The position numbers and the translations under genes were made by a program. Positions 4,013 to 61,150 of a stretch of 64,000 nucleotides of DNA are shown piece by piece. Origin of the DNA: Carpediemonas membranifera BICM (lineage: Eukaryota; Protista; Fornicata). Location: NCBI GenBank assembly GCA_019828565.1, contig JAHDYR010000025.1, positions 1 through 64,000 on the forward strand. The letters are read 5' to 3'. The notes below the pieces were generated by a model, which saw only the letters and a list, made by a program, of their open reading frames with translations, ran no database searches and was not told the origin of the DNA. Positions within the stretch are counted from its first letter, which is position 1; each line of letters starts with the position of its first letter.

Positions 4013-5998
4013 TTACTCCTCCGAGACCTCACTTTCACTGGCATCATCATACGGTTCAGGGTCGCGGGCCTGACCACCTTGCATGTTGGCCATGAAGGAC
4101 ATGAACTGTGTCATCATCTCCATGGGGTCCATCTGTCTGGTGGTCCTGGTTCTCCTGCTCTTGTTCCTGCGACGGGGCACTACCGCGGCGTCTCTGTTCT
4201 TGACCATCTCAATCGGTGGTCTGACAAGGGGGTCGGGTTCAGTGCCTGCCAGGTCTGCGGGTCTCTGCCGGGCGGCCTTGAGGGCTGAGATTTCTCGCTG
4301 TGCCTCTGCCAGTTGAAGTAGGAGCCTCTGTTTCTCGAGCGTCCTGCTGGTCCGGTAGTCTGCTTCTTACCGTCCCAGCGGTGTCGTCACTGTGTCTGCT
4401 CCTCTTTCCTGACTCGGATAGGTCGTCTCTGCCTTGGCTGCCTCGCTTGCCGGCTGCTGAGGAGTGGTTGCCTCTGCGGTTGTCTCTGGTTGTTCCAAGA
4501 TGTTCTCTAAGCCACTCGTTTCTCTCCCGCTGGCGCCTCTCTGCCTCTTCGAAGTCGGGTCTGATCCGGAGACCGCCCTGTTCTGCTCTGTTGGCCCTGG
4601 CTTCCAGACGTTCGAGCTCCGTGTCGCGTTCATAGATTTCAGGACGTCTGATTTCTCTGTCGATGAGGCGCCCAGCCTCTCTGTCGTCAGGGTGTCTGAT
4701 GTCTCTTTCGGTGGGTTGGTCAGCTTCTCTGGCGATGGGGCGTCTGACCTCATAGTCAGCCGGACGTCTGGCCTCTCTGTCAACTTGGTGACCCACCTCT
4801 CTGTCGTGGTGTCTCTCATCTCTGATGTCCGGGCGCCTGATCTCTTTGTGGTCACGGCGCTCGTCCTCGCGGCGTCTGTCCACCCGGGTTGCCGGGTCCA
4901 GGATGTCTCTGAAGTTCCTGCCTACCACTTGGTGCTCGACTTCGCCGACTGCCATCTGGAGGTGAGTGTCTCTGTACGTGACCCTGAAGGGCATCTCGTC
5001 CTTGCCGTCCACGTCGGGTTTGTATCCGCTGGGTGGGATGCCCCCCATTCTGACTCTGGCCTCTTCCGGGATCACTGTGGTGACCATGCGTCGGCCTTCC
5101 CAGCGCATGCGCTTCAGGATAGACCCCGCGTCTCTGGTTCTGATCATTCCCCAGTCTCTGGGGATGAATGCGACTCTGATGGAGGCTCTGGCGTTCGGGG
5201 GGCTTTGACATTGGCTATGCGCCCTTCAAACTCTCTGAGTGCCTCTGCTAGCTCTTCGCATCCCCAGGTCTCTTGCCGGGCGATGCGCTCTCTGCTGGGC
5301 CACCAGTTGACGAGCTGTGACAGTGTGACCATGTTCTCTTCGTTGTGCGCTCCAAGGCCGGCTCGGCCCTGGACCGCTCTGAGTTGCTCTGGGTTGTCTA
5401 GCTCCTCTTCCAGTGTCCAGATAGGGTTCCTAGTGACTCTGTTGTCTCTGTCAGTGAAGGCGTCAGGGGATAGGAGCAGGCCCTTCATCCCCATCGCTAC
5501 CTCTGCAAATCCGAAGCCAATGCCGAACCTGTGTTCTCTGTCTGGCACTACAAGGAACCTGTTGCCCTGGTGCCCGTCTCTGATCTCTCTGAACGCTGGG
5601 TGGGGGCCAAACTCCTGGAACGCTGTGTGCCTCGGCTGGAACCCCCAGCCCTGCTATGATGTCACTGCTTTCTCTGGCTGCTCTGACCTCTTCCTCAATG
5701 GCTGGCTGCAGCAGTCTGAGGGCGTCCTCTAACTCACCGATGCCGTTGGTGCCTCTGAATAGTGCTAGAACTCTGATTGCGAACAGTGTGCTGTCCGCCA
5801 GTGCGCAGTGATAGCACCCCGCCGTGTGGCTGTGGTAGGGGCATACTCTCTTGGGTGCTTCCCGTGATTGCCACCGGCTGGTCCACAGGTCTAGCCACTC
5901 CATGCTCTGCGCGTTGTTGTAATTGACTCTGAATCTCTGTTCGAGGTCGGGTCTAGCCCTGACCAGCAGCGTTGGCAGCTCGTTCTCGTCCACTAGTC
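4013..5998 (-). pseudogene. LINE family 1 ORF1 C-terminal half: end of the Maelstrom-like domain plus an Arg/Asp/Glu-rich repeat region
   Basis: CPYHSHTAGCYHCALADS; track ORFs 5463-5993, 5144-5548, 4239-5147 and 4013-4207 join through small frameshifts, mostly at homopolymers, and align end to end with 55677-57520. Confidence 0.75.
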
Positions 5999-18637: not shown

Positions 18638-18711
18638 TGACTTAAAGTCAAGTTTTGGCCTTGACTTTAAGTCACAAAAACTTGACTTGAAGTCAAGGAA
18701 TTGACAGTATG
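18638..18711 (-). repeat. TIR, A-type end
   Basis: Reverse complement of 5999-6072. Confidence 0.9.
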
Positions 18712-20304
18712 GACTAGTGGACGAGAACGAGCTGCCAACGCTGCTGGTCAGGGCTAGACCCGACCTCGAACAGAGATTCAGAGTCAATTACAACAACGCG
18801 CAGAGCATGGAGTGGCTAGACCTGTGGACCAGCCGGTGGCAATCACGGGAAGCACCCAAGAGAGTATGCCCCTACCACAGCCACACGGCGGGGTGCTATC
18901 ACTGCGCACTGGCGGACAGCACACTGTTCGCAATCAGAGTTCTAGCACTATTCAGAGGCACCAACGGCATCGGTGAGTTAGAGGACGCCCTCAGACTGCT
19001 GCAGCCAGCCATTGAGGAAGAGGTCAGAGCAGCCAGAGAAAGCAGTGACATCATAGCAGGGCTGGGGTTCCAGCCGAGGCACACAGCGTTCCAGGAGTTT
19101 GGCCCCCACCCAGCGTTCAGAGAGATCAGAGACGGGCACCAGGGCAACAGGTTCCTTGTAGTGCCAGACAGAGAACACAGGTTCGGCATTGGCTTCGGAT
19201 TTGCAGAGGTAGCGATGGGGATGAAGGGCCTGCTCCTATCCCCTGACGCCTTCACTGACAGAGACAACAGAGTCACTAGGAACCCTATCTGGACACTGGA
19301 AGAGGAGCTAGACAACCCAGAGCAACTCAGAGCGGTCCAGGGCCGAGCCGGCCTTGGAGCGCACAACGAAGAGAACATGGTCACACTGTCACAGCTCGTC
19401 AACTGGTGGCCCAGCAGAGAGCGCATCGCCCGGCAAGAGACCTGGGGATGCGAAGAGCTAGCAGAGGCACTCAGAGAGTTTGAAGGGCGCATAGCCAATG
19501 TCAAAGCCCCCCGAACGCCAGAGCCTCCATCAGAGTCGCATTCATCCCCAGAGACTGGGGAATGATCAGAACCAGAGACGCGGGGTCTATCCTGAAGCGC
19601 ATGCGCTGGGAAGGCCGACGCATGGTCACCACAGTGATCCCGGAAGAGGCCAGAGTCAGAATGGGGGCATCCCACCCAGCGGATACAAACCCGACGTGGA
19701 CGGCAAGGACGAGATGCCCTTCAGGGTCACGTACAGAGACACTCACCTCCAGATGGCAGTCGGCGAAGTCGAGCACCAAGTGGTAGGCAGGAACTTCAGA
19801 GACATCCTGGACCCGGCAACCCGGGTGGACAGACGCCGCGAGGACGAGCGCCGTGACCACAAAGAGATCAGGCGCCCGGACATCAGAGATGAGAGACACC
19901 ACGACAGAGAGGTGGGTCACCAAGTTGACAGAGAGGCCAGACGTCCGGCTGACTATGAGGTCAGACGCCCCATCGCCAGAGAAGCTGACCAACCCACCGA
20001 AAGAGACATCAGACACCCTGACGACAGAGAGGCTGGGCGCCTCATCGACAGAGAAATCAGACGTCCTGAAATCTATGAACGCGACACGGAGCTCGAACGT
20101 CTGGAAGCCAGGGCCAACAGAGCAGAACAGGGCGGTCTCCGGATCAGACCCGACTTCGAAGAGGCAGAGAGGCGCCAGCGGGAGAGAAACGAGTGGCTTA
20201 GAGAACATCTTGGAACAACCAGAGACAACCGCAGAGGCAACCACTCCTCAGCAGCCGGCAAGCGAGGCAGCCAAGGCAGAGACGACCTATCCGAGTCAGG
20301 AAAG
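18712..20304 (+). pseudogene. Duplicated fragment of LINE family 1 ORF1
   Basis: ORFs 18717-19565 and 19498-20304 match the reverse complement of 4404-5998. Confidence 0.85.
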
Positions 20305-48716: not shown

Positions 48717-51018
48717 ATGAACGAAGTAAATATGTCGTGGGAATGACTCAAACACTGACTAAGCCATCGACTTGGCGCAGCTGACCAGACAGTCAGATAT
48801 ACATTCATTTATTCCTGTCTCGCTCTCTTGCCTGTCGGAGACCAGCGGATTGAGATCGAGCCATAAAGTGCACCAATAGTGGGAACCGACTTCCCACTAT
48901 TTTCTCAGTGCCAATGAGCTATAGAGCTTTATTGAGGATATAAGCTTGTATAATAACACATCAATAGCGTCTGACGGCCGCTATGGCCCATGATACTCAT
49001 TAACAACATCAAACGAGTCAAAGGAACCACGAAACCACACAAGGAACGAGCTAGAAGAAACAATAGGAACCTTAATTGCATAAACAACATCAATACTGCC
49101 ACCAACTGTCCATTGGATTCCAGAAATAGCCATTGTCTCTTCTGGAACGTCCGGGAGAGAGCACGGGGGAGAGAGGATATTGGGGCCCAGAAAACACCAG
49201 CACCACCGCAAGTAAGCTATTTTATTGCAAAATACTCTACTTGCGCTGGTACTTCAGCGTTTTCGCGGCCCTTTGCCCATCTTTCGTTGTCTGAATTTTT
49301 TCGTGCAGAATTCAGACGAGTGTCGCCTGGCAGAGGCTGAGCAGCGGAGCTTAGTCCCTGTGGCACCACTCGTCTGGCACAGCTCCCGGGTATGCTCCAG
49401 AAAATTCAGGTGCAGATTTGGGAGCAGAAATGTCGACGAACCCCGAAAACACCATAACCGGCACCAGTGAGCGCATCTTCGTTGATAAAGCTCATTGGTG
49501 CTGGTAATATGGCGTTTTCGGGGTTCAAATACTGTACTCCTCATCCCTGGCGCCCTCATCCTGGCGCCTCATCCCTGGCGCCCTCATCCTGGCGCATCAT
49601 CCCTGGCGCCCTCATCCTGGCGCCCTCAACAGCAAGTTCCATCATCCACATCACTCCCTAACAACATCAACGACTCGCCTACCACCGACAGCGATGGCGA
49701 AGTCTGCGTTGATGTCGCCAGTGCCAACCCAGCTGGCATACGCGTCGCAATGAATGTAAATGTTTACGTGTTCTCTTCGTCCCTTCTATCGTCCAGGATC
49801 TGCTTTCAGATGTCCATGAGCGATCATCCCTTATCCTGCGGAGCAGCCCAACATCAGCTCAAGCGGTTCTGAGCATGCGTACAATGCTTCTGGGGCATGC
49901 AGAGTGATCATGTAGGAGCTTTATCACGATTCCAGGCTAGTTAGTGAGGGAATTCGTCTGCAGTTCCCGGCAAATCTCATTATCTCCATTATTGCTGCAG
50001 TATTCAAAGTAAACGCGAACAACACGATCTATCTCCATTCATTGGCGCCTCGAGGAGCGCTTCAGTCCAGCTAGAGCGTGCTTCAGCAGCATTTCGATCG
50101 AGATTAAAAAACACCCGAATTCTAGCTCTGTTCTGTGGCCGCTGCAGGCACCGCTGGGCGCGATAGAGCTCGGAGCGGCGTTGTCTGCCAAAAAGACCTA
50201 TTTGCTCCCGGTAAAAATTTCTTCCTACAGGGAATATAGGCCATTTTGGAGGTATGAGCGACCGGGAGGGGGGAATGGGGGCATTTATGGTATGACTGGA
50301 CTCTACTCGTGCAGACTATTATAACGAGGCTCATATCAGACCTCTACGGCCGCTATACGAGGAGAAACGAGCCAGTAAGGGCACTAGCGGCCCATGGCCG
50401 CAGCAGCGCCCAGCCAAACTCAGCTATAGAGTCACCTGAGGCCCCAAATGACGTGCTGATCAGGTCGACTCCCATCTATTGACTTGGTAATTGCAGAGGG
50501 CGTCTGAACGCGATGTCCTAATAACCGACTTGGTCGGAGCGGTTCGGCGATGACTCCGTTGTATTCCACACCTTCTTCTGATGCCGAAACATGCAGTCCT
50601 TTATAGTCAACGCGCGTCCTGTCCGTCAGGCATGAAGGGCATTCAGCAGAGGCATTGCTGCGGTCTGCAGACCGCCCTAGCGCTTCAGGATGGCCAACTG
50701 CATGATCTGGACCCATGTCTATCAAATCCATTTTGATCACATCAAACATGTGTCAAATCCGGCAAATCGATTTTGCGATAAAAAAAGGGGCAGAGGGGAG
50801 GAAGCGACCCATAAGGCGTACTTATGGACCATTTCCTCCCCCCTGCCCGTTTTTTGAGTCTCAACTCTCAATTCCAATTTGTCCCTATGTTACTTTTTTC
50901 TAGCAGGATTTAAAGTTTGATACTGCGCATGCGTATTGCTTAGGTATAGCCAAGTACTACCATACCACTTTGAAGATCCAGCTCCGGCTCATCGTCGAGT
51001 TCATTTTTTCTTGCAAAA

Positions 51019-51092
51019 TGACTTAAAGTCAAGTTTTGTCCTTGACTTTAAGTCACAAAAACTTGACTTGAAGTCAAGGAATTGACAGTATG
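51019..51092 (-). repeat. TIR, B-type end
   Basis: Reverse complement of 9592-9665; ~47980-51092 is an inverted homologue of 9592-13115. Confidence 0.9.
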
Positions 51093-51128
51093 CTCTGTGC
51101 GAAGTAGTCTCTGCTCTCTGCGGCTAAG
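51093..51128 (-). pseudogene. 36 bp remnant of LINE family 1 ORF1 (LAAESRDYFAQ)
   Basis: Continues DAVNGLAAE from 59659 and leads to RLVDENEL at 5998. Confidence 0.8.
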
Positions 51129-52102
51129 AAAGAAAGAAAGAAAATTTATGGTGCCTGGTATCGGGCCCCGGTTACTTAGGCTGATCTCCCTTATTACTGG
51201 AGCCGAGTTCCCCGGGGCGCTGCCTCCTCCCTGCGATTGAACTTGTCAGCTGCGTCCAACGAGCGATTCGGTGCTACTGCTTCCGCTCACTCCCGATTTC
51301 ACTTCCCCCCATAGGCCTTCGCCATCTCCGTGCGCTGAGCGCTTTCCTGTCTCCCTGTAAACCCGGCAGCTTCCAGGGAGCCTGGGGGTCTGTCCTCGGT
51401 GCTTCCACAGGCAGGTTTGTCCTGCAAGACCTTCTCTATAGCACTCCCTGATTCCCTGCAGTCCCTACGGGGTCGTTCAAGCATGGCACCCTCTCCTCTT
51501 TCCAGATTCCCTGTTCAGTGCCCCCACGACCCTGTTAAGTGGCCTACCCGTGGGCGGGGAGAGCAACTAAGTCCCTCTCATCTACCCCCTGTTAGGCGGC
51601 GTGGGTTAGGGCTAACACAGACTCTAGATCTGCAAGGCCTAGTACCCCTTATGATAGTTCTCTTGTGCTACACTTCCCAGCGTCCCTCTATCGTTCACAA
51701 GGGCGGCGGGGACGTCATGTCCCCCCGTATCCCATGCTCAGTCCCTGCAGTTTCCTTAGGTTCACCGCGAGTGGTGCAACCATCCAATTGATGGATTTCC
51801 TCTGTCCCTGGCCCTGCCCTCTCCCTGGGAAACATGGGGGTCTCCCCTTGATCCCAGAGTCTATGCTTCCCTGCCCCCTTTCTGGATGTGGTGTTCCTTA
51901 TCTATCCATCTATTCTATAGCTATCATAGACCTTTGCCAGGGCTCTCAGCCCAGCTCGCAGTCCTTCCCATATCTCTTCCGACCCTGTTAACACTAGTTG
52001 TTGCACCTCTAAGATTGGCCTCTTCTCATACCACCTCCCATTCGGGCCTCTTCTGACTTGCAATTCCCTGGTCCTCTCCTTAGCTGTCTTCCATATCTTT
52101 TC

Positions 52103-55100
52103 TCAGTCATCTCCTCTTTCAACCTCTGGGCACTCACACATAATGTGGGCCGCCGATCCCAGCGGCTGACCCCTTACCCACTCCCTGATTAGTGCCTGCT
52201 TCCTGGCTTGGTTTGGCTGCTCTCTCGCTATTTGCCACAGTAACTCTATCTCGCTCTCCTTTGTGCACAGGGGGCACCTCCTTTGTATCTTGTGTTTGAG
52301 TTCCTCACCCATCGCCAGGTCCGCCAGCGCTCGCTCTGGGCCTTCACCCTTTCCGCTGATGATGGAGACGGGCTGACATTCGCTGCCACCGACACTATCC
52401 TTTTCCACTCTGCCCTTGACTGCCACTTCCCTGTCTTCCTACTTATGGCCGGTTTCCCCGCCATGCACTTTCCCATACGTTTGGGTCCTAGGACTTCCAT
52501 GAGCCCCACCGCTGTCTTGCTCTTGCACCTCCTGGTCCAGTTCATTCTTACCATCTCCCTACCAAAGTCTATCTTCCCTGCATTCGTTGCTCCCTCTCTT
52601 GTTCCTCTGAGGAGTGCGTTCACTGAGTCCCTGGCTTTCCACATAATCGATCCCTCCTTCCAGACCCTGTCTCTGATTGGTATATCCTGGCCCCTGCTTG
52701 TCACGATCCTCTTGACTGCTAGCATCTCCAGGTGGGCTTGCAGGTCCATCCATCCGTTCAAGATGCGCATGACCGAGCCCCCCACCTGGGCCTGTTCCGG
52801 CCATGATGCCCCGCCAATCCGTCCATATCTTGTTCCCCCCTGCTGCGTAGCCCCACACCTCCACTCCAAACATTATCCTCGGCCATATGTAAACTTCGAG
52901 GAGGAGCCTGCTGGCTAGCGCCGGCATGTTGCCTCTGGTCCATCCCACTCTTCTCACTAGCTTCTTGTAACTTTCGCTCTGCTCCCGCTTCTTTCTGATA
53001 CAGGCTGCCAGTGGGTCTTTTCCGCTGGCTATCCAGAGACCTAGGTACTTAGCTTCCTCTTTTGCCATTAGGGTAACTCCCCCACTCTCGCCACTGCTGC
53101 CCTGTCTACACTGATCATCTCACTCTTTTTGTGCATTTGCCCTCATGAGGTGCTCCTTGATAACTTCTATGACTAGGTTCGCCACTATCTTGCTCTTTTC
53201 CGGTGTCTCCCCTGTGACCGCTGTATCGTCCACGAACATGGTTAGGGTGGCCGGCAGCGTGTCCCGGACTCTTGGTAACTCCGTTGGTGGTTCCCTGATA
53301 TCGTACTCTTGTCCCTGATGCTTCTTCCTGACCAGGTGAGGCCAGTTTGCCATGAACAAAACGAACAGGGTCGGCGCTAGGACACATCCTTGCTTCACTC
53401 CCCTGTTTGTTCTCTCCCATGACCCTGCCCCCTTCACCGAGATCCATGTCTCTTCTAGTGTACTCTGTATTGCCCCTGATGAGGTGGTCTTCGACCCCCA
53501 TTCCCTGCAGCTTATCCATGAGGATGTCCCTCGGGACGGTGTCATAGGCTTTCTCTATGTCTAGGAAGATCGACGTGGTCTCCCCCTTCCTGGTGTCTCT
53601 GCACGATGTATTGTATCTGTTGTATTACGTCCTTATCCGATTGGAACCCTGCTTGCTCTCTTGGGATGAGGTGCCATGTGGCTGCTTCTAATCTTCTCTT
53701 CAGGAGCCTACCATACACCCTATACAGTAGTGGTGTTAGCGAGATGGGTCTGTACGACTCCGGCTTCACTCTGGGCTTCCCTGTCTTGTGGATGGCCGAG
53801 ACTGTAGCATACTTCCATGTTGTCGGGATCTTGCCCTCCCTGTATACCCTGTTCATGAGCCTAGTTATCTGAGCGATCCCCTGGTCATCTGTGTCCCTGA
53901 GCATGTCCCCTGTAGTGTGGTCCGGTCCCGGTGCAGTGTCCCTCTTTATCCTTCTGATCGCTTCTCGTATTTCTCTCTCCTTAACTTCGTCCTCCCTCTT
54001 TCCATTGCCTCTATCCTTCCACTCCGGTTCCCTGCCCCTGCTCACTCCCTGCATACTGTTGTAGGAGGATCTTACCTATTTCTTCCTTGTTGGTGGTAAT
54101 CTTCCCGTCCTTCAGTATGCTCTCTGGCATGCCCTTGAACTGGTTTTCACACCACCATCTTCTTACCGCTGCTTCCACCATGGACCTGGATGCTTTGTAT
54201 CCTTCCTTCGCGCTCCGGCTGAGGTCCTGGATCCACTCTTCCCTGCGTTTTCCCCAGAAGGCCTGTAGCTCACGCTTCATGATCTCACTTCTGGTCTTGT
54301 TTCCCCTCTTCTGTCCATGGTGTGTGCCGGAGTTCCGACCACACCTTTTCTTTGATGACCTCTTCCCTGTCTCCACTGCCTGGGTGACCTGACGGCTCGC
54401 CCATATCCTTCCTGATATCCTCCTCCCACTCATCCAGGCTCTTAAAACGGTGCAGTCTTCTGACTGATGTGCGTTCAGCCTTCTTCCTCATGTTCCACAC
54501 TCTGACGCCCGGTATGTCTAGGACTTCCTCTCTCTTTGTAGTCCGTTGGATCCGTTGTTCCCTCCATTCCAGTCTTATCATGTTGTGGGCTGACCCCCAG
54601 ACTCCGAGTCGACTAGCATCCAGTACTTCTATCCTTGCTCCTCTGATCCCTGATGATACCAGCGCGAAGTCCGGAGTGGTAGTTCCCTTGGTGAGGGTAC
54701 CTTCCATGGGGATCACTGCTCCCAGCTTATAGTCCCTGATCAGGTCCTTCCATCTTGCCATTGTGGCTATCCTTTTTGGGGTCGAGGTTCCAGTCCCCTA
54801 TGATGATTGTTTCCATCTCTCCTTTCATCTCCATAATGCTCCTTATTCCGTCCCTGAACTCGTCCTTCTCCTCCCTTCCGTGGCCGACCGGTGGGCCATA
54901 CACGTTGATCACCAGGATGTCCCTATGGGTTCTGAGTATGCTCACCTGTATCCTCCCTGATAAGCTATCTGTGATGCCTACGTCCCAGCTCCCTCTTGCT
55001 CTTGGGTTGATGATTGTGCCCACTCCTTCTCTAGTACCCCTCGTCCTGGGCGTCCGGCTACTGCTCCCTGCTATGCCCAGCTGGGCATCTATTCGGCGCT

Positions 55101-55355
55101 GGCTTTGGGCTTCTTTTCTTCCTCCTCTCGTTGTCCATAGCTAGCTCCTCCTCTGTTTCCTTCCCTGCCATTGCGTAGTCGAAGTCTATGAAGTTGTGTA
55201 CCCTCGTAGTCGCCGTCCTCCACGTTTCTTGGATGCATACTGCATCTGTGTCGCTCAGTTTCATCCTTATAGCCGTTGCCATTGAGGCCGTGGAAGTCCT
55301 TTCCCTTCCCGATGTGTCCCTCAGTGTTCAGGCTCGCTATCTTGATCGTTTCCAT
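52103..55355 (-). CDS. ORF2: APE endonuclease, reverse transcriptase and C-terminal CCHC-like finger (multiple frameshifts)
   Basis: SLNTEG, CIQETW, GDWN, APGPD, YRPISL, QAGF, GVKQGCVLAP, FVDD, KYLG and CPLC...HIMCEC. Confidence 0.9.
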
Positions 55356-55414
55356 TCTTGTACTCCGTCTTTCCTATCCTGCGAATTTTCGGAAATTCCC
55401 TGCAATCTGCCCCT

Positions 55415-55608
55415 TGTCCCGTCACGGGGCCTTCGTGCCGGCTCCGGTTACCCATGGCGGGCCAACTATGGGTTACCCTGGTGACCATCCTTACCTTCGG
55501 GCAGGGATACTTAGGAGGGGGCGCATTGGCGTGACCCCCCTTTGGCTGCCGCCACAGCCCACCGGCAGTGCATTTCAGCTAATGCCGGACCCTGGGTGGG
55601 AGCCAGGG
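55415..55608 (-). promoter_or_regulatory. Conserved structured inter-ORF RNA element, family 2 copy
   Basis: Homologue of 3753-3947 with compensatory stem changes. Confidence 0.6.
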
Positions 55609-55676
55609 TTGGATTAAAAGAAAAAGAACTGACAACTGTCACTATCACTCTCAAAAGAATACCACTTTACCCCTGC

Positions 55677-58600
55677 TTAATCGGTCTCCGTTGAGTTGCC
55701 ACTGTCACTGCCATCATCGCTCTGGTTCTCGGTTGCCATCCCCTGTTGTTGCTGCATGGTCTTCATCACCGTTGACACGATCTGGGCCACTAGCTCCATC
55801 TGGTTTAGCTGTCTCGGCTTGCGAGACCTCTTTGTCCGAGTCCTCTTCTTGTGGCGGACTACCCTGTGCTCCTTGCCGGTACCCTGGTTTCCCTGGGTGT
55901 CAGCCGGTGCTGGGGTTGGCGTCGCCTGCTCCTCCTCCCTGCTGTCCCTGGCCCTGAGTGCGAGAATCAGCTTCTTGGCTTCATCAAGTTCCTTCCTGAG
56001 TTCGTCCCTCTCCGCGTCGCTGTCACTCGACTGTCTGCTTCCAGCCTCGTAACGGGCGTCGCCGTCGAGCTTGCCCCTCTTTCCAGCCCCTCTGTAGCTC
56101 ACCGCCCTGTCCTTGCCACTCCTCTTGCCGGTCCCATGAGGGGGTGAGCGGCGTCTGCTCTCTCCGGAGTCTCTGCCCTGATCGTCCCTGCGCTCTCTGT
56201 CCTCATGGTGAGGCCCGTCTTCCCAGCGTCCTCTGACCTCGCGGCGAGGCCCGTCGTCCCTGCGCTCTCTGTCCTCGTGGTGAGGCCTGACCTCTCTGCG
56301 CTCTCTGTCCTCATGATGAGGCCTGACGTCCCTGCGCTCTCTGTCGCACCGATGGACGCCGTTGTTTCTGGGCTCTCTCTCGTCTCTGAGGGTTCCGTCG
56401 GCTCGGCGGTTGTTGGTATAGAGGTCATCTCGGCCTACTGGCCCGACCGGCGTGCCAATCATCTCGGTGAGCCGTCTGATAGATCCCTCTATGCCCATGT
56501 CCGAGTAATCGACCGTGTAGGGTCTCTCCTCCTTTCCATCTCTTGACGGGATGTACTTAACCGTCGGCCTCTGGGTGATCTTGCAGTTATCCTCTGGCGG
56601 GATGGTCGTGGACACCATACGGGTCCCCACCTTCTTCATCCGTCCCAGTGTCGTCCCTGCCTCTCTGACCCTGATACAGCCCCCAGTCTCTCGGGATGAA
56701 GGCCGCTCTGATGGTTGCGCTATACCCTGGGGGTGCCCTGACGTTCGCTATGGCTTTCTCCTCGCGTCTGACGCTCTCTGCCAGGTCGTGGACTCCCGGC
56801 TGACCCTGATGAGCAGTATCCTCCCTTGAGGGCCACCAGCTGTAGACCATCGCGATGGTGACGATGTCCTCGTCCCTAGTAACTGCCCTGCCAGCTCTTC
56901 CCTGCAACATCAGTCTCTGAATGTGGGTCGTGTTCTCATGGATCGACCATATGGGGACTCTCGTGGTGACTCCTCTCTCCATGACCGTGGTTGGGGCCAA
57001 TAGAATGCCCTTCATACCCTTAATGACCTCGCTGAATCCGAAGCCGATCCCATAGCAGTGATCGTTGTCCGGGACCACTAGGATGCGGTCGCCCTCTTCC
57101 CTGCTTAGGTCCCTGCTGTTGCCGTACGGGTGCCCTCCGAAGATGTTGAAGGTCTCACGCCTGTACGCTACTCCGTTGCCTCCGCAGAGGTCGTCTCTGA
57201 TCCCTGCGTCCCTGACCGTGTCATACATGCTGTTGAAAGCGTTACCCATCGCACTCTCCAGATCCGGCGTGCTCATCTTCTTCAGCATCATGCCCCACAC
57301 CTTCGCCGCGAACAACGTTGCATCTGCCAGCGCACAATGGTAGCACCCTGCAGTGTGCCTGTGGTACGGACAGGCCCCCTTCGGGAGCTCCCTGCGCTGC
57401 CATTGGCTGGCCCATATATCTGCCATCTCCCTGTAGTTCTTGATCTCGTAGTTTGCCCTGTACTCTCTTGCCTTATCCGGGGCGAGCTCCTCGATGGCGT
57501 CGGCCAGCTCGCTATCGTCCACCAGCCTCATTCTAAAGAAGTCCCTGGTGTCCCTGTTGAGCCCGTTGACCTCGTTCGTCAGGAGGAACTTCTCCATGTG
57601 GACGCCCTTGGCATGAAGGACTAGCTTCCAGTTCTCCCTGGTCTCTCTGTCTCTCAGCTTGGCTGCGAGCCGCGTGGCCCACTCTCTAAATCTGCTGAAG
57701 TGCTGCTGATAGTCCATCGGCACCTCCCCTGTGTCCACTTCCACGAACGTCGCTGGGGGAATCCCCGTCACTGCCCACGTCGCGTATCTGCTCTGGTCCA
57801 CCTTGTTGGCCGGCAGGTTGGGCTCATAGAAGAGGCCGTGGCCATGGCCAACGACCTCCCCCGTCTCGACGTCCACTAGCACGAGCCCCCCTCTGTCGGC
57901 ACCGCACTGATCCCTGCCCTCTCACTCCCAGGATCTCCACACTCGAAGTCGATAGAACCGAGGATGAGCTTCTTCTGACCCTGACTCTGCAATGCCTCCG
58001 GTAGGCTCCCTGCTGATGCACTTCCCTCTGATGCTCGGGGTATGCTCTCTTCTTCCTGCTGATCAAGCTCGGCTCCAAGGCCCCTTCTGGCGCTCACTCC
58101 TTCCGCTTGTGTCAACACGACCTTGGGTTTGGGGTCTTCCTCTTGGCTGGTCTGTGCGCCGCTCTCGTTGTCTGACTCTTCTTCCCTGTCCCTCTTTTTG
58201 GCGGCGGCTGGTGGCATTGATCACCCTGGCCCTGACGTCAGAGAAGACGAGCTTGTTGCTGAGCGGCGTCTCCTGTCCTTGTGCCCTTATTGCGCCTCTG
58301 CCCTCCGTGTTGACTCCTGTCTTGCACCAAGCTGCCTGCCAGACCGCCGGCGCCTCCGGGGCCTGCAACCTGAGGATGTCCCTGCCTTCCTCCATGAATC
58401 TGGTGATCTGCCATGCTTTGCAATCTCTGATGTCGATGAGGACCTTGTAGGTGCCATCGTCCTGCTCCATAGCGATCCTGGTGACCAGGCCCTGGTTAGT
58501 GGGGTCCCACACCTCCTCTCCTGCGATGGCCTCGACGGCTTTCTCATCTCCATACCCTGATGTGAGCGTGAATGTGCCCGTCTCTCTGCCCTCAATGCTG

Positions 58601-59092
58601 TCTCTCTCACTGTTCCACTCGATGTTGCTCTGTTCTCTCGGTTGGAGGATGGCCTCTTCGATCTTGTGGTCGGAAGGCCACTTGCTCATGTCCCTGTGCC
58701 CTGGTTGGATGGTGACGTTCTCCTTGGCCTCTGCTAGGCGCCGTTCTTCGTCCTCTCTCGGGTCTAAGGCCTCTGTCATTGCGTAGAAGATGTCTCGAAG
58801 CCCTAGGATTCCGTTGGGGTTACGGAGGATCTCGTCTCTGTTGTTGGTGATCCCTGCGGCACGTAGCACTCTCCTCGCATTCAGTATCACCTCTTTTCGT
58901 GCTTCTGGAGCTAGCTCCGAACGATCTCCCTGAAAAATCTTCTGCGCGACGCAGTAGTAGCGTTCTGGTGCCCTTCTCTTCCATCAAGTAGTCCGTTAGT
59001 AGCTCTCTAATCGTGTCCCACTCTTTTTGAGCGGATTCCCTGATCTTATCTGGTATCTCCACTCTCATCTGGTTGTTCTCTTTTCCCTGCAT
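55677..59092 (-). CDS. ORF1 region (probably one ~1100 aa ORF broken by indels): unknown N-terminal domain, Maelstrom/DEDDh-like domain, Arg-rich repeats, coiled coil
   Basis: IDFE, PTEGG, VTGIP, AKGVHME and CPYHRHTAGCYHCALAD; most frame changes fall at homopolymer runs. Confidence 0.7.
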
Positions 59093-59658
59093 GAAAAAAG
59101 CTTGGCAAATGCATCGACGCGAAAATCGGTCAGCATGGCCCTGCGCAGGTACTGTCCCCGCACGGACCTCCCTGTTTTCTCATTTTTCCCTGATCGTTTG
59201 TTTTGGGGCTCGCGGCGAAATGGCGCGGTTCTAAAAATGCATCGCCATTTTCATGCCACACCGTCCCTGGATTTTTGGCCGTTGTTACGCCATTCGTAGT
59301 GTGTTCGCGGCCTCTATCTGGGCCCCCTGCTGTTGTTCGCCGGTGATCCTTCCTTCCCTCTGAGCTGGCGAAAATTCCATTCCATCGATGCTCCGACATC
59401 CTTCCCTGCGCTCTCCGTCTCTTTCCCTGTAAATCTAAGCTCCATATTGTTCGTTCTCTAGTCCCTGTGGCTATGGAGCTCCCACTCATAACCGGCGGTG
59501 CACCCTGAATGTAACCTTCTGGTTCGTTGGACAGGGGCCATAGTCGCTCCTTTTGAGCTCGATGGGGCACTGTTCTATCTATTCTAGTACAGGCCTGTTG
59601 GTCTTCATCCACCCCTGTTGTAAGTGAGAACACTTAGCTGAAAACATTGGTGGACTGC

Positions 59659-61150
59659 CTCTCTGCGGCTAAGCCGTTCACTGCGTCTGTGAGGAGGAAC
59701 GTCTCCATGTGCTTTCCCTTGGCGAACAGGTGGACTCTGCAGCCTTCTCTTCTCTCATACGCTTTGAGCTCCGTCGCTAGACGGTCGCCCCACGCCTGGA
59801 AGGTGTGGACGTGCTGCTCTAGGTCTCTGGGGGGTCTGCCTGTCGCTATGTCCACGAAGGTCGCTGGTGGTAGGCCTGTGACAGCCCATGATGTGTGCCT
59901 TGACTGCTCGACTCTGTTGAGCGGCATGTCCTGGTAGAACATACCGTGGCCGTGGCCGACCACTTCACTGCTATCCACATCTATCATGACAATGCCTCCT
60001 TCGACCGGGATCGCTGGTGTGCCTTGTCTTGAGCTGCCCGTGTAGCTGCACTCAAAGTCAATGGCTGCTAGGACAAGTCTCTGGTTCGGCTGGGTCTCTG
60101 ATAAGGGCAGGCTGCTGGTCTCGTGCTGGCTCCTCCCTTCGCCTGCCATCCTTCTGGCCTCCTGCTGATCTCTGATATGCTCTTGGACGATGTCTTCCAG
60201 GCTAATCCTCGGCGGCACCTCCTTGTCTCTGTTCACACTGTCTATAGGAAGCTGAGTGCGCTTGCCTGATGCCTCGCCCCCAGCACCTGCCGCTTGGGGG
60301 TTCTTGTGGTTCTCTTGTTGGCACTGACTCTGTTTATCCTCTGAGACGCTGGGGTTGCCGGGGCTTGGCTACCACAGATACTGTCCGGCCTCGTCATTTC
60401 TACGTCGCTGTCGATGTCCGTGCTAGCAGACCTGTCCTCCTGGGAGGCATGTTCGGCTCTCTTGTCACGGCTGATCTCTGCTCCGATGATTTCGGCTCTG
60501 ACTACTGCAAACTGCGGCTTGCCACTGAGCGGCGTCTCTTCCCCTCGCTTCCGGATACCGCTACGGCCGCTGGTGTCTACTCCTGAGCTATTCCATGCCG
60601 CTTGCCACACCACTGGTGCCTCTGGTGCCTGCAGTCTCAGGATGTCTCTTGCCTCTTCCATGTACCTGGTGATGGGCCATGCCTCCGTGTCTTCCAGGTC
60701 CAGTAGAACTCTGAAGGTGCCATCCTCTTGCTCTATGGCTACTCTGGTGATGGGTCCTCTGTTGGACGGGTCCCACACTTGCTCGCCGCTGAGGCACTCG
60801 GGGGCTTCATCCTCTGCTGTCCCTGTGATGACCGAGTACATGCCAGTCTCTCTGTTTTCGACGCTGTCTCTGACGTTGTCCCACTGAATGGGGTTCTGGC
60901 CTCTGGGTTGCAGGACTGCTTGTTCGATGGACTGCTCCTTGGGCCATCTGGCCATGTCCTTGTGCCCTGGTCTCACTGATGTGGGCTCGTTAGAGCTGGC
61001 GATGCGCTGAATCTCTGCTTCTCTGGGGTCTAGGGCCTCTGTGACCATGATGAAGAGGTCGCGAAGCCCGTGGATGCCGTTCGGATGTCTGAGGATGGTG
61101 TCCCTGTTGTCGGTCACTCCTGAGGCTGCTCGCAAATCTCCGTCGTTCAT
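59659..61150 (-). mobile_element. LINE family 1, 5' part (ORF1 N-terminal domain and first half of the Maelstrom-like domain)
   Basis: 60242-61150 is homologous to 58063-58890; 59659-60236 contains IDFE, PVEGG, VTGLP and AKGKHME. Confidence 0.85.

Follow-up and report, generated by a model that had tools for sequence, protein, structure and literature searches.

An autonomous LINE-type retrotransposon

Within the window, a 64,000-nucleotide stretch of the Carpediemonas membranifera genome, positions 51129-59658 of the minus strand hold a full non-LTR retrotransposon, read from 59658 to 51129. This is an autonomous LINE-type element: its ORF2 encodes an apurinic-type endonuclease (APE) and an RT, it is flanked by target-site duplications, it ends in a 3' tail, and 5'-truncated copies of it are found. 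The features of the element and its flanks, in the direction of reading, are as follows.

59661..61150, minus strand: older family C element, the insertion target of the window element; 98% identical to L026 family C
59659..59673, no strand: target-site duplication, upstream copy, 15 bp; exact match to 51114-51128
59093..59658, minus strand: 5' UTR of the family A element; 5' end common to at least 9 copies
55677..59092, minus strand: ORF1, its frame broken in the window copy by several 1-nt shifts; colinear with the unbroken family B ORF1
58201..59077, minus strand: N-terminal domain of ORF1, conserved; matched by tblastn to residues 40-330 of family B
57259..57983, minus strand: MAEL-like DEDDh exonuclease domain with the Glu-Cys-His-Cys set; ORF1 residues ~414-656
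56444..57258, minus strand: conserved post-nuclease domain; by alignment, in all families and the second genome
55677..56443, minus strand: disordered basic repeat region, predicted long helix (coiled-coil-like) and acidic tail of ORF1; by alignment and model
51902..55373, minus strand: ORF2, APE and RT; Pfam RVT_1 and Exo_endo_phos, coordinates by tblastn
51145..51901, minus strand: 3' UTR; the genome has at least 33 nearly identical 3' ends
51129..51144, minus strand: (TTTC)n tail; identical tail in six other full-length copies
51114..51128, no strand: target-site duplication, downstream copy, 15 bp; exact match to 59659-59673

The upstream duplication sits in the interrupted ORF1 of the older family C element. 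In a genome search, family A copies began at query positions 1-4 with 100% identity, and 3' ends outnumbered 5' ends (at least 33 near-identical 3' ends versus ~9 5' ends), which is the 5'-truncation pattern of LINEs. The first-pass annotation had placed ORF1 inside the retrotransposed unit, and the exact 15-bp duplication and the (TTTC)n tail confirm this in the window. The same holds elsewhere in the genome: all seven full-length copies have their own duplications of 12-16 bp, each at a different genomic site and each enclosing ORF1, and therefore ORF1 belongs to the mobile unit. At several of the duplications the first one or two bases are also part of the tail, a hint of pairing between tail and target.

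ORF2 follows ORF1 after a spacer of ~300 nt and has many frame breaks in the window copy. The RVT_1 and Exo_endo_phos matches were obtained on ORF2 pieces in the window and on less broken copies, and Pfam detected no RNase H domain in the same material. The RT had only remote matches, none of them named, with at most 32% identity across a quarter of the query.

The unbroken family B ORF1 with which ORF1 is colinear has 1167 aa (L014:154-3657); relatives with an unbroken frame span ~1120-1170 aa. In order, the protein has a conserved N-terminal domain, a linker, the DEDDh domain and another conserved domain, then a disordered basic region followed by a long helix, which the family B model predicts at residues 1065-1093. 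The N-terminal domain had no match in Pfam or among PDB sequences and no usable language-model match, and the domain after the nuclease was predicted with low structural confidence. Pfam detected no RRM, CCHC, PHD or esterase domain in this ORF1. One 1-nt frame break of the window copy falls within the nuclease domain, at ~57885-57891, with many more elsewhere. Frame breaks occur in all family A copies examined and may, in the window copy as in the others, be assembly errors.

The nuclease domain is inherited by several LINE families

The domain is shared by five or more diverged LINE families of C. membranifera, families D and E among them, with more than 150 matches, and several families in one other assembly, GCA_002919055.1, have it too. 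ORF1 with the domain always lies upstream of the endonuclease/RT ORF2, in the five families as in the second genome, and the ORF2 of a GCA_002919055.1 element is colinear with that of the window (26% identity over 923 aa, E 3e-84). Within this LINE lineage the nuclease domain is inherited as a fixed component.

The first-pass annotation also reported that two families in the window keep four motifs of the domain. All four are present in family A (57259-57983) and in family C, where they are spread over separate fragments, with the first three at 59661-60092 and the Cys/His motif at 5730-5996 on the minus strand and 18714-18980 on the plus strand. The family C element at 59661..61150 contains the N-terminal domain and, of its own MAEL-like domain, the first 144 residues.

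These distributions bear on whether the ORF1 region could be a neighbouring or captured host gene outside the element. Its unusual domain content might suggest so, and nothing more does. Given that ORF1 lies within the duplications in 7/7 copies, exists in more than 150 copies and precedes ORF2 in constant order in five families and a second genome, the likelihood of this is next to nil, and the copies examined refute it.

A DEDDh domain with putative Maelstrom-type zinc ligands

Across 8-12 sequences with 25-53% identity, nine residues of the domain are invariant or nearly so: D13, E15, E32, E131, C206, H209, H217, C218 and D222. One annotated copy (P0001) has Tyr in place of D13. Judged from these alignments, such invariance is far beyond chance. 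The catalytic residues fall into the DEDDh pattern, with D13/E15 as the Asp-x-Glu of ExoI, E131 as the ExoII acid and H217/D222 as the His-x4-Asp of ExoIII; E131, the third of the catalytic acids, is invariantly Glu, and the set therefore reads D-E-E-h-D. At the level of residues, E32, C206, H209 and C218 make up an invariant ECHC set of putative zinc ligands. The last motif had initially been given as CPYH-x6-HCALAD; the motif is there, with a spacer of 7 residues rather than 6, which yields C-x2-H-x8-C-x3-D. This spacing, counted to the Asp position, equals that of C290/H293/C302/R306 in Bombyx MAEL, where the Glu sits on strand beta-2 and the Cys/His ligands precede the last helix, and in our model the predicted secondary-structure context of E32, C206, H209 and C218 matches that of the Bombyx protein (PMC4408791). 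A comparison of dN and dS between families, proposed in the first-pass annotation, gave dN of 0.38-0.41 and dS above 1, values of limited use as a ratio since dS is saturated.

Structure and sequence tie the domain to Maelstrom

The structural model was built from 13 sequences, all ORF1 homologues. The nuclease part had a pLDDT of mostly ~75-95, with some 10-residue blocks down to 56-67, and its predicted fold is that of a DEDD nuclease (RNase H-like). When the model was compared with solved structures, the best 5 of 1000 chains were all five solved Maelstrom entries, with Z of 12.3-13.2: 5af0 (Z 13.2, 200 residues aligned at 3.8 Å), followed by 9nhc, 9nhd, 9nhs and 4ybg (Z 12.3-13.0). These entries align to the model over 190-200 residues, and 4ybg had the top target-normalised TM-score, 0.58. 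Other DEDDh nucleases reached Z of at most 11.9, a margin for Maelstrom of only ~1.3. The best structural hits are thus of the DnaQ/MAEL fold, with Maelstrom at the top, and the first-pass reading of a Maelstrom-like DEDDh plus ECHC domain agrees with this ranking as well as with the invariant residues. The 13-sequence model supersedes an earlier one built from 3 sequences, which had a pLDDT of 70, weak Foldseek rows and Maelstrom outside the top 50 by Z. Comparison with a viral structure library returned only generic phage and giant-virus exonucleases.

Sequence profiles led to the same protein group. An exhaustive HMMER search of 1.84 billion representatives matched P0014 of Rhizamoeba saxonica at E 2e-4, and among the matches whose source was checked this was the only one outside Carpediemonas records and GCA_002919055.1. 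P0014 is itself a Maelstrom-domain protein, scoring 69 bits against Pfam Maelstrom (PF13017; cut-off 22), and hhalign paired it with ORF1 at 98.2% probability (E 2.8e-14, 182 columns) with all four motifs in register. ORF1 is accordingly homologous, at the profile level, to a protein that passes PF13017. Direct searches returned less. PF13017 gave no match at E up to 10 against the window pieces and the unbroken family B ORF1, in which Pfam as a whole found nothing relevant; a PDB sequence search with a single protein and with an 8-sequence ORF1 profile found no solved Maelstrom and nothing else; and word-based homologue searches with P0014 and the ORF1 alignment added zero new relatives.

The absence of a PF13017 match would fit a DEDDh exonuclease of generic type that is not specially related to Maelstrom and acquired its Cys-His-Cys residues independently. 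So would the language-model neighbours of the domain, which are generic exonuclease and Rv2179c-like clusters, and the Z of 11-12 that many DEDDh nucleases reach. We nevertheless regard such an origin as highly improbable: the five Maelstrom entries come first and with more residues aligned, the only unrelated protein reached among matches with a checked source is a Pfam-validated MAEL with the four motifs in register, and the ligand spacing is the same as in Bombyx MAEL (PMC4408791). The ORF1 nuclease is of the DnaQ/DEDDh fold, of the Maelstrom (MAEL)/arenavirus-nucleoprotein type, and has the Maelstrom-type Glu-Cys-His-Cys residues.

A probable exoribonuclease and its possible roles

Both residue sets are invariant in ORF1, and Entamoeba histolytica EHI_192630, a protist MAEL-domain exoribonuclease that has the catalytic and ECHC sets, is active (Chen et al. 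2015, PMC4408791). By analogy with this enzyme, the ORF1 domain is probably an active Mg/Mn-dependent 3'-5' exoribonuclease with a structural zinc. Taken together, an element as described above whose domain would be a working, zinc-held enzyme of this kind is the account that we consider likely. The domain might instead bind RNA without catalytic activity, as animal Maelstrom does, and stand in for the RRM or zinc-knuckle of other ORF1 proteins. Bombyx MAEL binds single-stranded RNA and has no nuclease activity (PMC4408791), and Pfam finds neither an RRM nor a CCHC domain in this ORF1. However, the catalytic residues lost in animal MAEL are all invariant here, at 25-53% identity and in two genomes, which makes a silent module distinctly unlikely.

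A six-frame search of the host genome with PF13017 gave no match, and a protist MAEL protein used as the query matched LINE ORF1 copies only, so that a host Maelstrom gene was not found. The first-pass proposal that a host silencing nuclease had been taken over by the element for counter-defence is unsupported as it was stated. The host genome does contain two Piwi-domain genes; a search of it for RNase III (Dicer-type) domains found none, which weakens a role centred on siRNAs.

For an active exoribonuclease, the single likeliest role, which we put forward tentatively, is that it would ride on the ribonucleoprotein particle of the element and remove RNAs that would feed Argonaute-based silencing: element RNA that is double-stranded or paired with antisense RNA, or small RNAs. 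This proposal is modelled on the arenavirus nucleoprotein (NP) exonuclease, which removes dsRNA to avoid detection. We counted in its favour the two Piwi-domain genes and the putative Glu-Cys-His-Cys zinc site, which is the same in the arenavirus NP exonuclease (PMC7968707). In a bolder form, the retrotransposon would encode its own suppressor of RNA silencing, an ORF1 nuclease that destroys the double-stranded or small RNAs guiding the host Argonautes. The MAEL/arenavirus-type zinc exonuclease would then be an ancient component of selfish RNA elements, and animal Maelstrom or the arenavirus NP exonuclease could descend from such an element protein and not the other way round; we think this unlikely.

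A role in retrotransposition itself is possible, though we lean against it. The nuclease might shorten the template RNA at its 3' end as far as (TTTC)n, so that this tail can pair with the nicked target, or, once the first strand has been made, clear the template from the RNA:DNA hybrid in place of the missing RNase H. Single-stranded RNA is a substrate of the Entamoeba MAEL enzyme (PMC4408791), and the overlap of tail and duplications hints at the pairing. Clearance would suit an ORF2 that has no RNase H domain, in a genome with only three RNase_H loci versus more than 150 ORF1 copies. Yet host enzymes suffice for most LINE clades that lack RNase H, and the nuclease is located in ORF1 and not beside the RT.

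Relation to known ORF1 proteins and nucleases

LINE ORF1 proteins are usually viewed as RNA-binding chaperones, and the known types are L1 coiled-coil/RRM/CTD, zinc-knuckle, PHD and esterase; we know of no nuclease-domain type in their classification. Like them, this ORF1 lies upstream of ORF2 within the unit, has basic regions and has, in the predicted structure, a long helix that could drive multimerisation. We found no paper on a LINE with a Maelstrom-type or other nuclease domain in ORF1, in line with the first-pass remark that no such LINE was known. A conserved and, from its residues, apparently catalytic ORF1 nuclease would be a new activity for the retrotransposon toolkit, and it indicates that little-studied metamonad genomes harbour LINE lineages missed by standard domain libraries.

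Protist MAEL proteins (EHI_192630 and R. saxonica P0014) resemble ORF1 in having DEDD-type catalytic residues together with the Glu-Cys-His-Cys set. They are small, stand-alone cellular proteins, whereas the ORF1 version is embedded in a ~1150-aa LINE protein present in more than 150 copies, and the Pfam MAEL model matches P0014 but not ORF1. To our knowledge, protist MAEL proteins have no known part in silencing; their nuclease function and the origin of Maelstrom can now be tested. Animal Maelstrom, a piRNA-pathway factor, is the best structural match (Drosophila 4YBG, Bombyx 5AF0) and has the same zinc-ligand positions and spacing. It differs in that its catalytic residues are lost and an HMG box is present, and it silences transposons, whereas the ORF1 domain is encoded by one.

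The C-terminal exonuclease of Lassa NP (3MWT/3Q7V; Z 11.5 and 19% identity to the ORF1 domain) is likewise a DEDDh enzyme with the Glu-Cys-His-Cys zinc site, and it is joined to the protein with which a selfish RNA element coats its RNA (PMC7968707). That element is an animal virus and not a retrotransposon, and the N-terminal domain of NP is unrelated as far as tested. Removal of dsRNA has been shown for arenavirus NP, whereas for the ORF1 nuclease we only infer it. Since Maelstrom, arenaviruses and ORF1 have this kind of domain in common, the finding links three systems: a LINE ORF1, the silencing of transposons by animal Maelstrom and the hiding of RNA by arenaviruses.

ORF1 lies within a mobile LINE

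The window contains a complete non-LTR retrotransposon (LINE) on the minus strand, from 59658 to 51129, belonging to family A, one of at least five diverged C. membranifera families (A-E).

Layout of the family A element
51114-51128 and 59659-59673: exact 15 bp target-site duplication flanking the element
~570 nt (-): 5' UTR
59092 to 55677 (-): ORF1
~300 nt (-): spacer from ORF1 to ORF2
55373 to 51902 (-): ORF2, apurinic-type endonuclease (APE) and reverse transcriptase (RT)
downstream of ORF2 (-): 3' UTR
51129-51144: (TTTC)n tail, the 3' terminus

The first-pass annotation had placed ORF1 inside the retrotransposed unit, and six further copies bounded by duplications of 12-16 bp bear this out. 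Matches of ~100% identity occur elsewhere in the genome both to the element's first 250 nt and to its last 254 nt. Both ends lie on one contig in these six copies, each with its own duplication at a different site, and reading the flanks showed that these duplications abut the shared 5' end on one side and the shared tail on the other. Near-identical 3' ends number at least 33 against ~9 for 5' ends, the pattern expected of 5'-truncating LINEs.

Two families adjoin in the window because an older family C relative (59661-61150) received the family A insertion in its ORF1. This family C element (-) is itself split: a further piece lies at 51093-51128 (-), its ORF1 resumes ~45 kb away from 5996 to 5730 (-), and this distant part recurs as an inverted duplicate at 18705-19514 (+). 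Just past the downstream duplication, at 51005-51085, the family C frame terminates in hairpin-rich short inverted repeats, perhaps the terminus of another insertion.

Many single-base frame shifts interrupt both ORF1 and ORF2 of the window copy. When the window element was compared with four family A copies (L052-L055), we found only 4-17 substitutions, yet private 1-nt indels by the dozen. Repeats in unpolished long-read assemblies typically show such a ratio; it is not typical of decay and suggests assembly errors. Therefore, the frame breaks may not be real, and we based the analysis on copies with naturally unbroken frames. Two family B copies (L014 and L016) have an uninterrupted frame of 1172 codons containing a 1167-aa ORF1.

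The nuclease domain is conserved across LINE families

A 13-sequence alignment gave the order of ORF1 as a conserved N-terminal domain, a variable acidic linker, the nuclease (family B residues ~414-656), a second conserved domain, disordered basic repeats, and a long helix. Between families, dN was ~0.33-0.54 in the conserved parts, with dS saturated (> 1), and ~0.9-1.6 in the linkers.

A profile search returned more than 150 matches in the C. membranifera genome. Besides A, B, and C, two far more distant families, D and E, carry the domain (hhalign 99.65% for family D) in an ORF directly upstream of the endonuclease/RT ORF. A second assembly, GCA_002919055.1, contains several diverged ORF1 homologues, and on one of its contigs ORF1 is followed by an intact APE/RT ORF2 that is colinear with the Carpediemonas ORF2 (26% identity over 923 residues, E 3e-84). 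Shared among families A-E and a second assembly, the nuclease is therefore an old inherited trait of the LINE lineage, not a one-off capture.

The homologues from GCA_002919055.1 (L049, L050, and L051) lie on short contigs whose G+C content is different (52% against 61%). The family D ORF (L056:3449-5677, equivalent to G000:C4:58448-60676, and L057:3649-6685 (-)) has, upstream of the Maelstrom-like domain, a short sequence similar to the catalytic Cys motif of OTU proteases, with no Pfam match.

Sequence and predicted structure point to Maelstrom

The Pfam Maelstrom model did not match ORF1. A three-family profile, run exhaustively with HMMER against 1.84 billion representatives, recovered 15 proteins, annotated C. 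membranifera proteins among them; of those whose source was looked up, all but one came from C. membranifera or one other assembly. The sole exception was a Rhizamoeba saxonica protein that scores 69 bits against Pfam Maelstrom (cut-off 22). In alignment with the ORF1 profile it reached 98.2% probability (182 columns), every motif in register, and three Maelstroms came top, weakly, when it was searched against PDB sequences.

We modeled the structure from ORF1 homologues alone, in an alignment without any Maelstrom sequence. The pLDDT over the nuclease domain was mostly ~75-95, with some 10-residue blocks falling to 56-67. Among 1000 PDB chains re-aligned to this predicted model, the five top ranks went to the five solved Maelstrom entries (Z 13.2, 13.0, 12.8, 12.7, and 12.3), each aligned over 190-200 residues at 3.6-4.1 Å. 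Other DEDDh nucleases ranked next (Z <= 11.9, 160-180 residues), including the Lassa nucleoprotein exonuclease (Z 11.5), which had the highest identity, 19%.

Predicted activity and role of the nuclease

Comparison of eight and then twelve sequences (25-53% identity; numbering from the nuclease-domain alignment) identified D13, E15, E32, E131, D156, C206, H209, H217, C218, and D222 as invariant or near-invariant. The DEDDh nuclease motifs ExoI and ExoIII correspond to D13/E15 and H217-x4-D222, respectively, and E131, in the opening turn of the helix that follows strand 4, occupies the ExoII acid position. E32 lies in strand 2; C206-x2-H209-x8-C218 stands before the last helix, C218 immediately after the catalytic His.

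Because both residue sets, catalytic and zinc-ligand, are invariant, and an Entamoeba Maelstrom-domain protein that has the two sets shows exoribonuclease activity (PMC4408791), the ORF1 domain is probably an active, zinc-stabilized 3'-5' exoribonuclease. Conservation of the catalytic residues makes a solely RNA-binding function less probable. By analogy with the arenavirus nucleoprotein, we rank first a role in which the nuclease would remove double-stranded or small RNAs that otherwise guide silencing. The host genome has two Piwi-domain (Argonaute family) loci, G000:C7:87108-88037 (-) and G000:C65:23790-24737 (-), but a six-frame Pfam search of the genome detected no Ribonuclease_3 (RNase III) domain. 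RNase_H gave only three loci in such a search. Nearly as likely, and favored by a LINE lineage without RNase H, is that the nuclease acts in the insertion reaction, either trimming the template at its 3' end or removing RNA from the hybrid.

Comparison with known systems

The first-pass annotation had proposed co-option of a host silencing nuclease; nothing we found backs this, and no host Maelstrom gene was detected in the genome. In full-text literature searches, we found neither a report of a LINE with a Maelstrom-like or DEDDh domain in ORF1 nor a study of these elements in Carpediemonas. Bombyx Maelstrom holds its structural zinc through E137 (strand 2), C290, H293, and C302, and the former Asp position is now R306 (PMC4408791); the putative ligands of the ORF1 nuclease are spaced identically. 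This zinc site is shared by the Lassa nucleoprotein exonuclease (PMC7968707).
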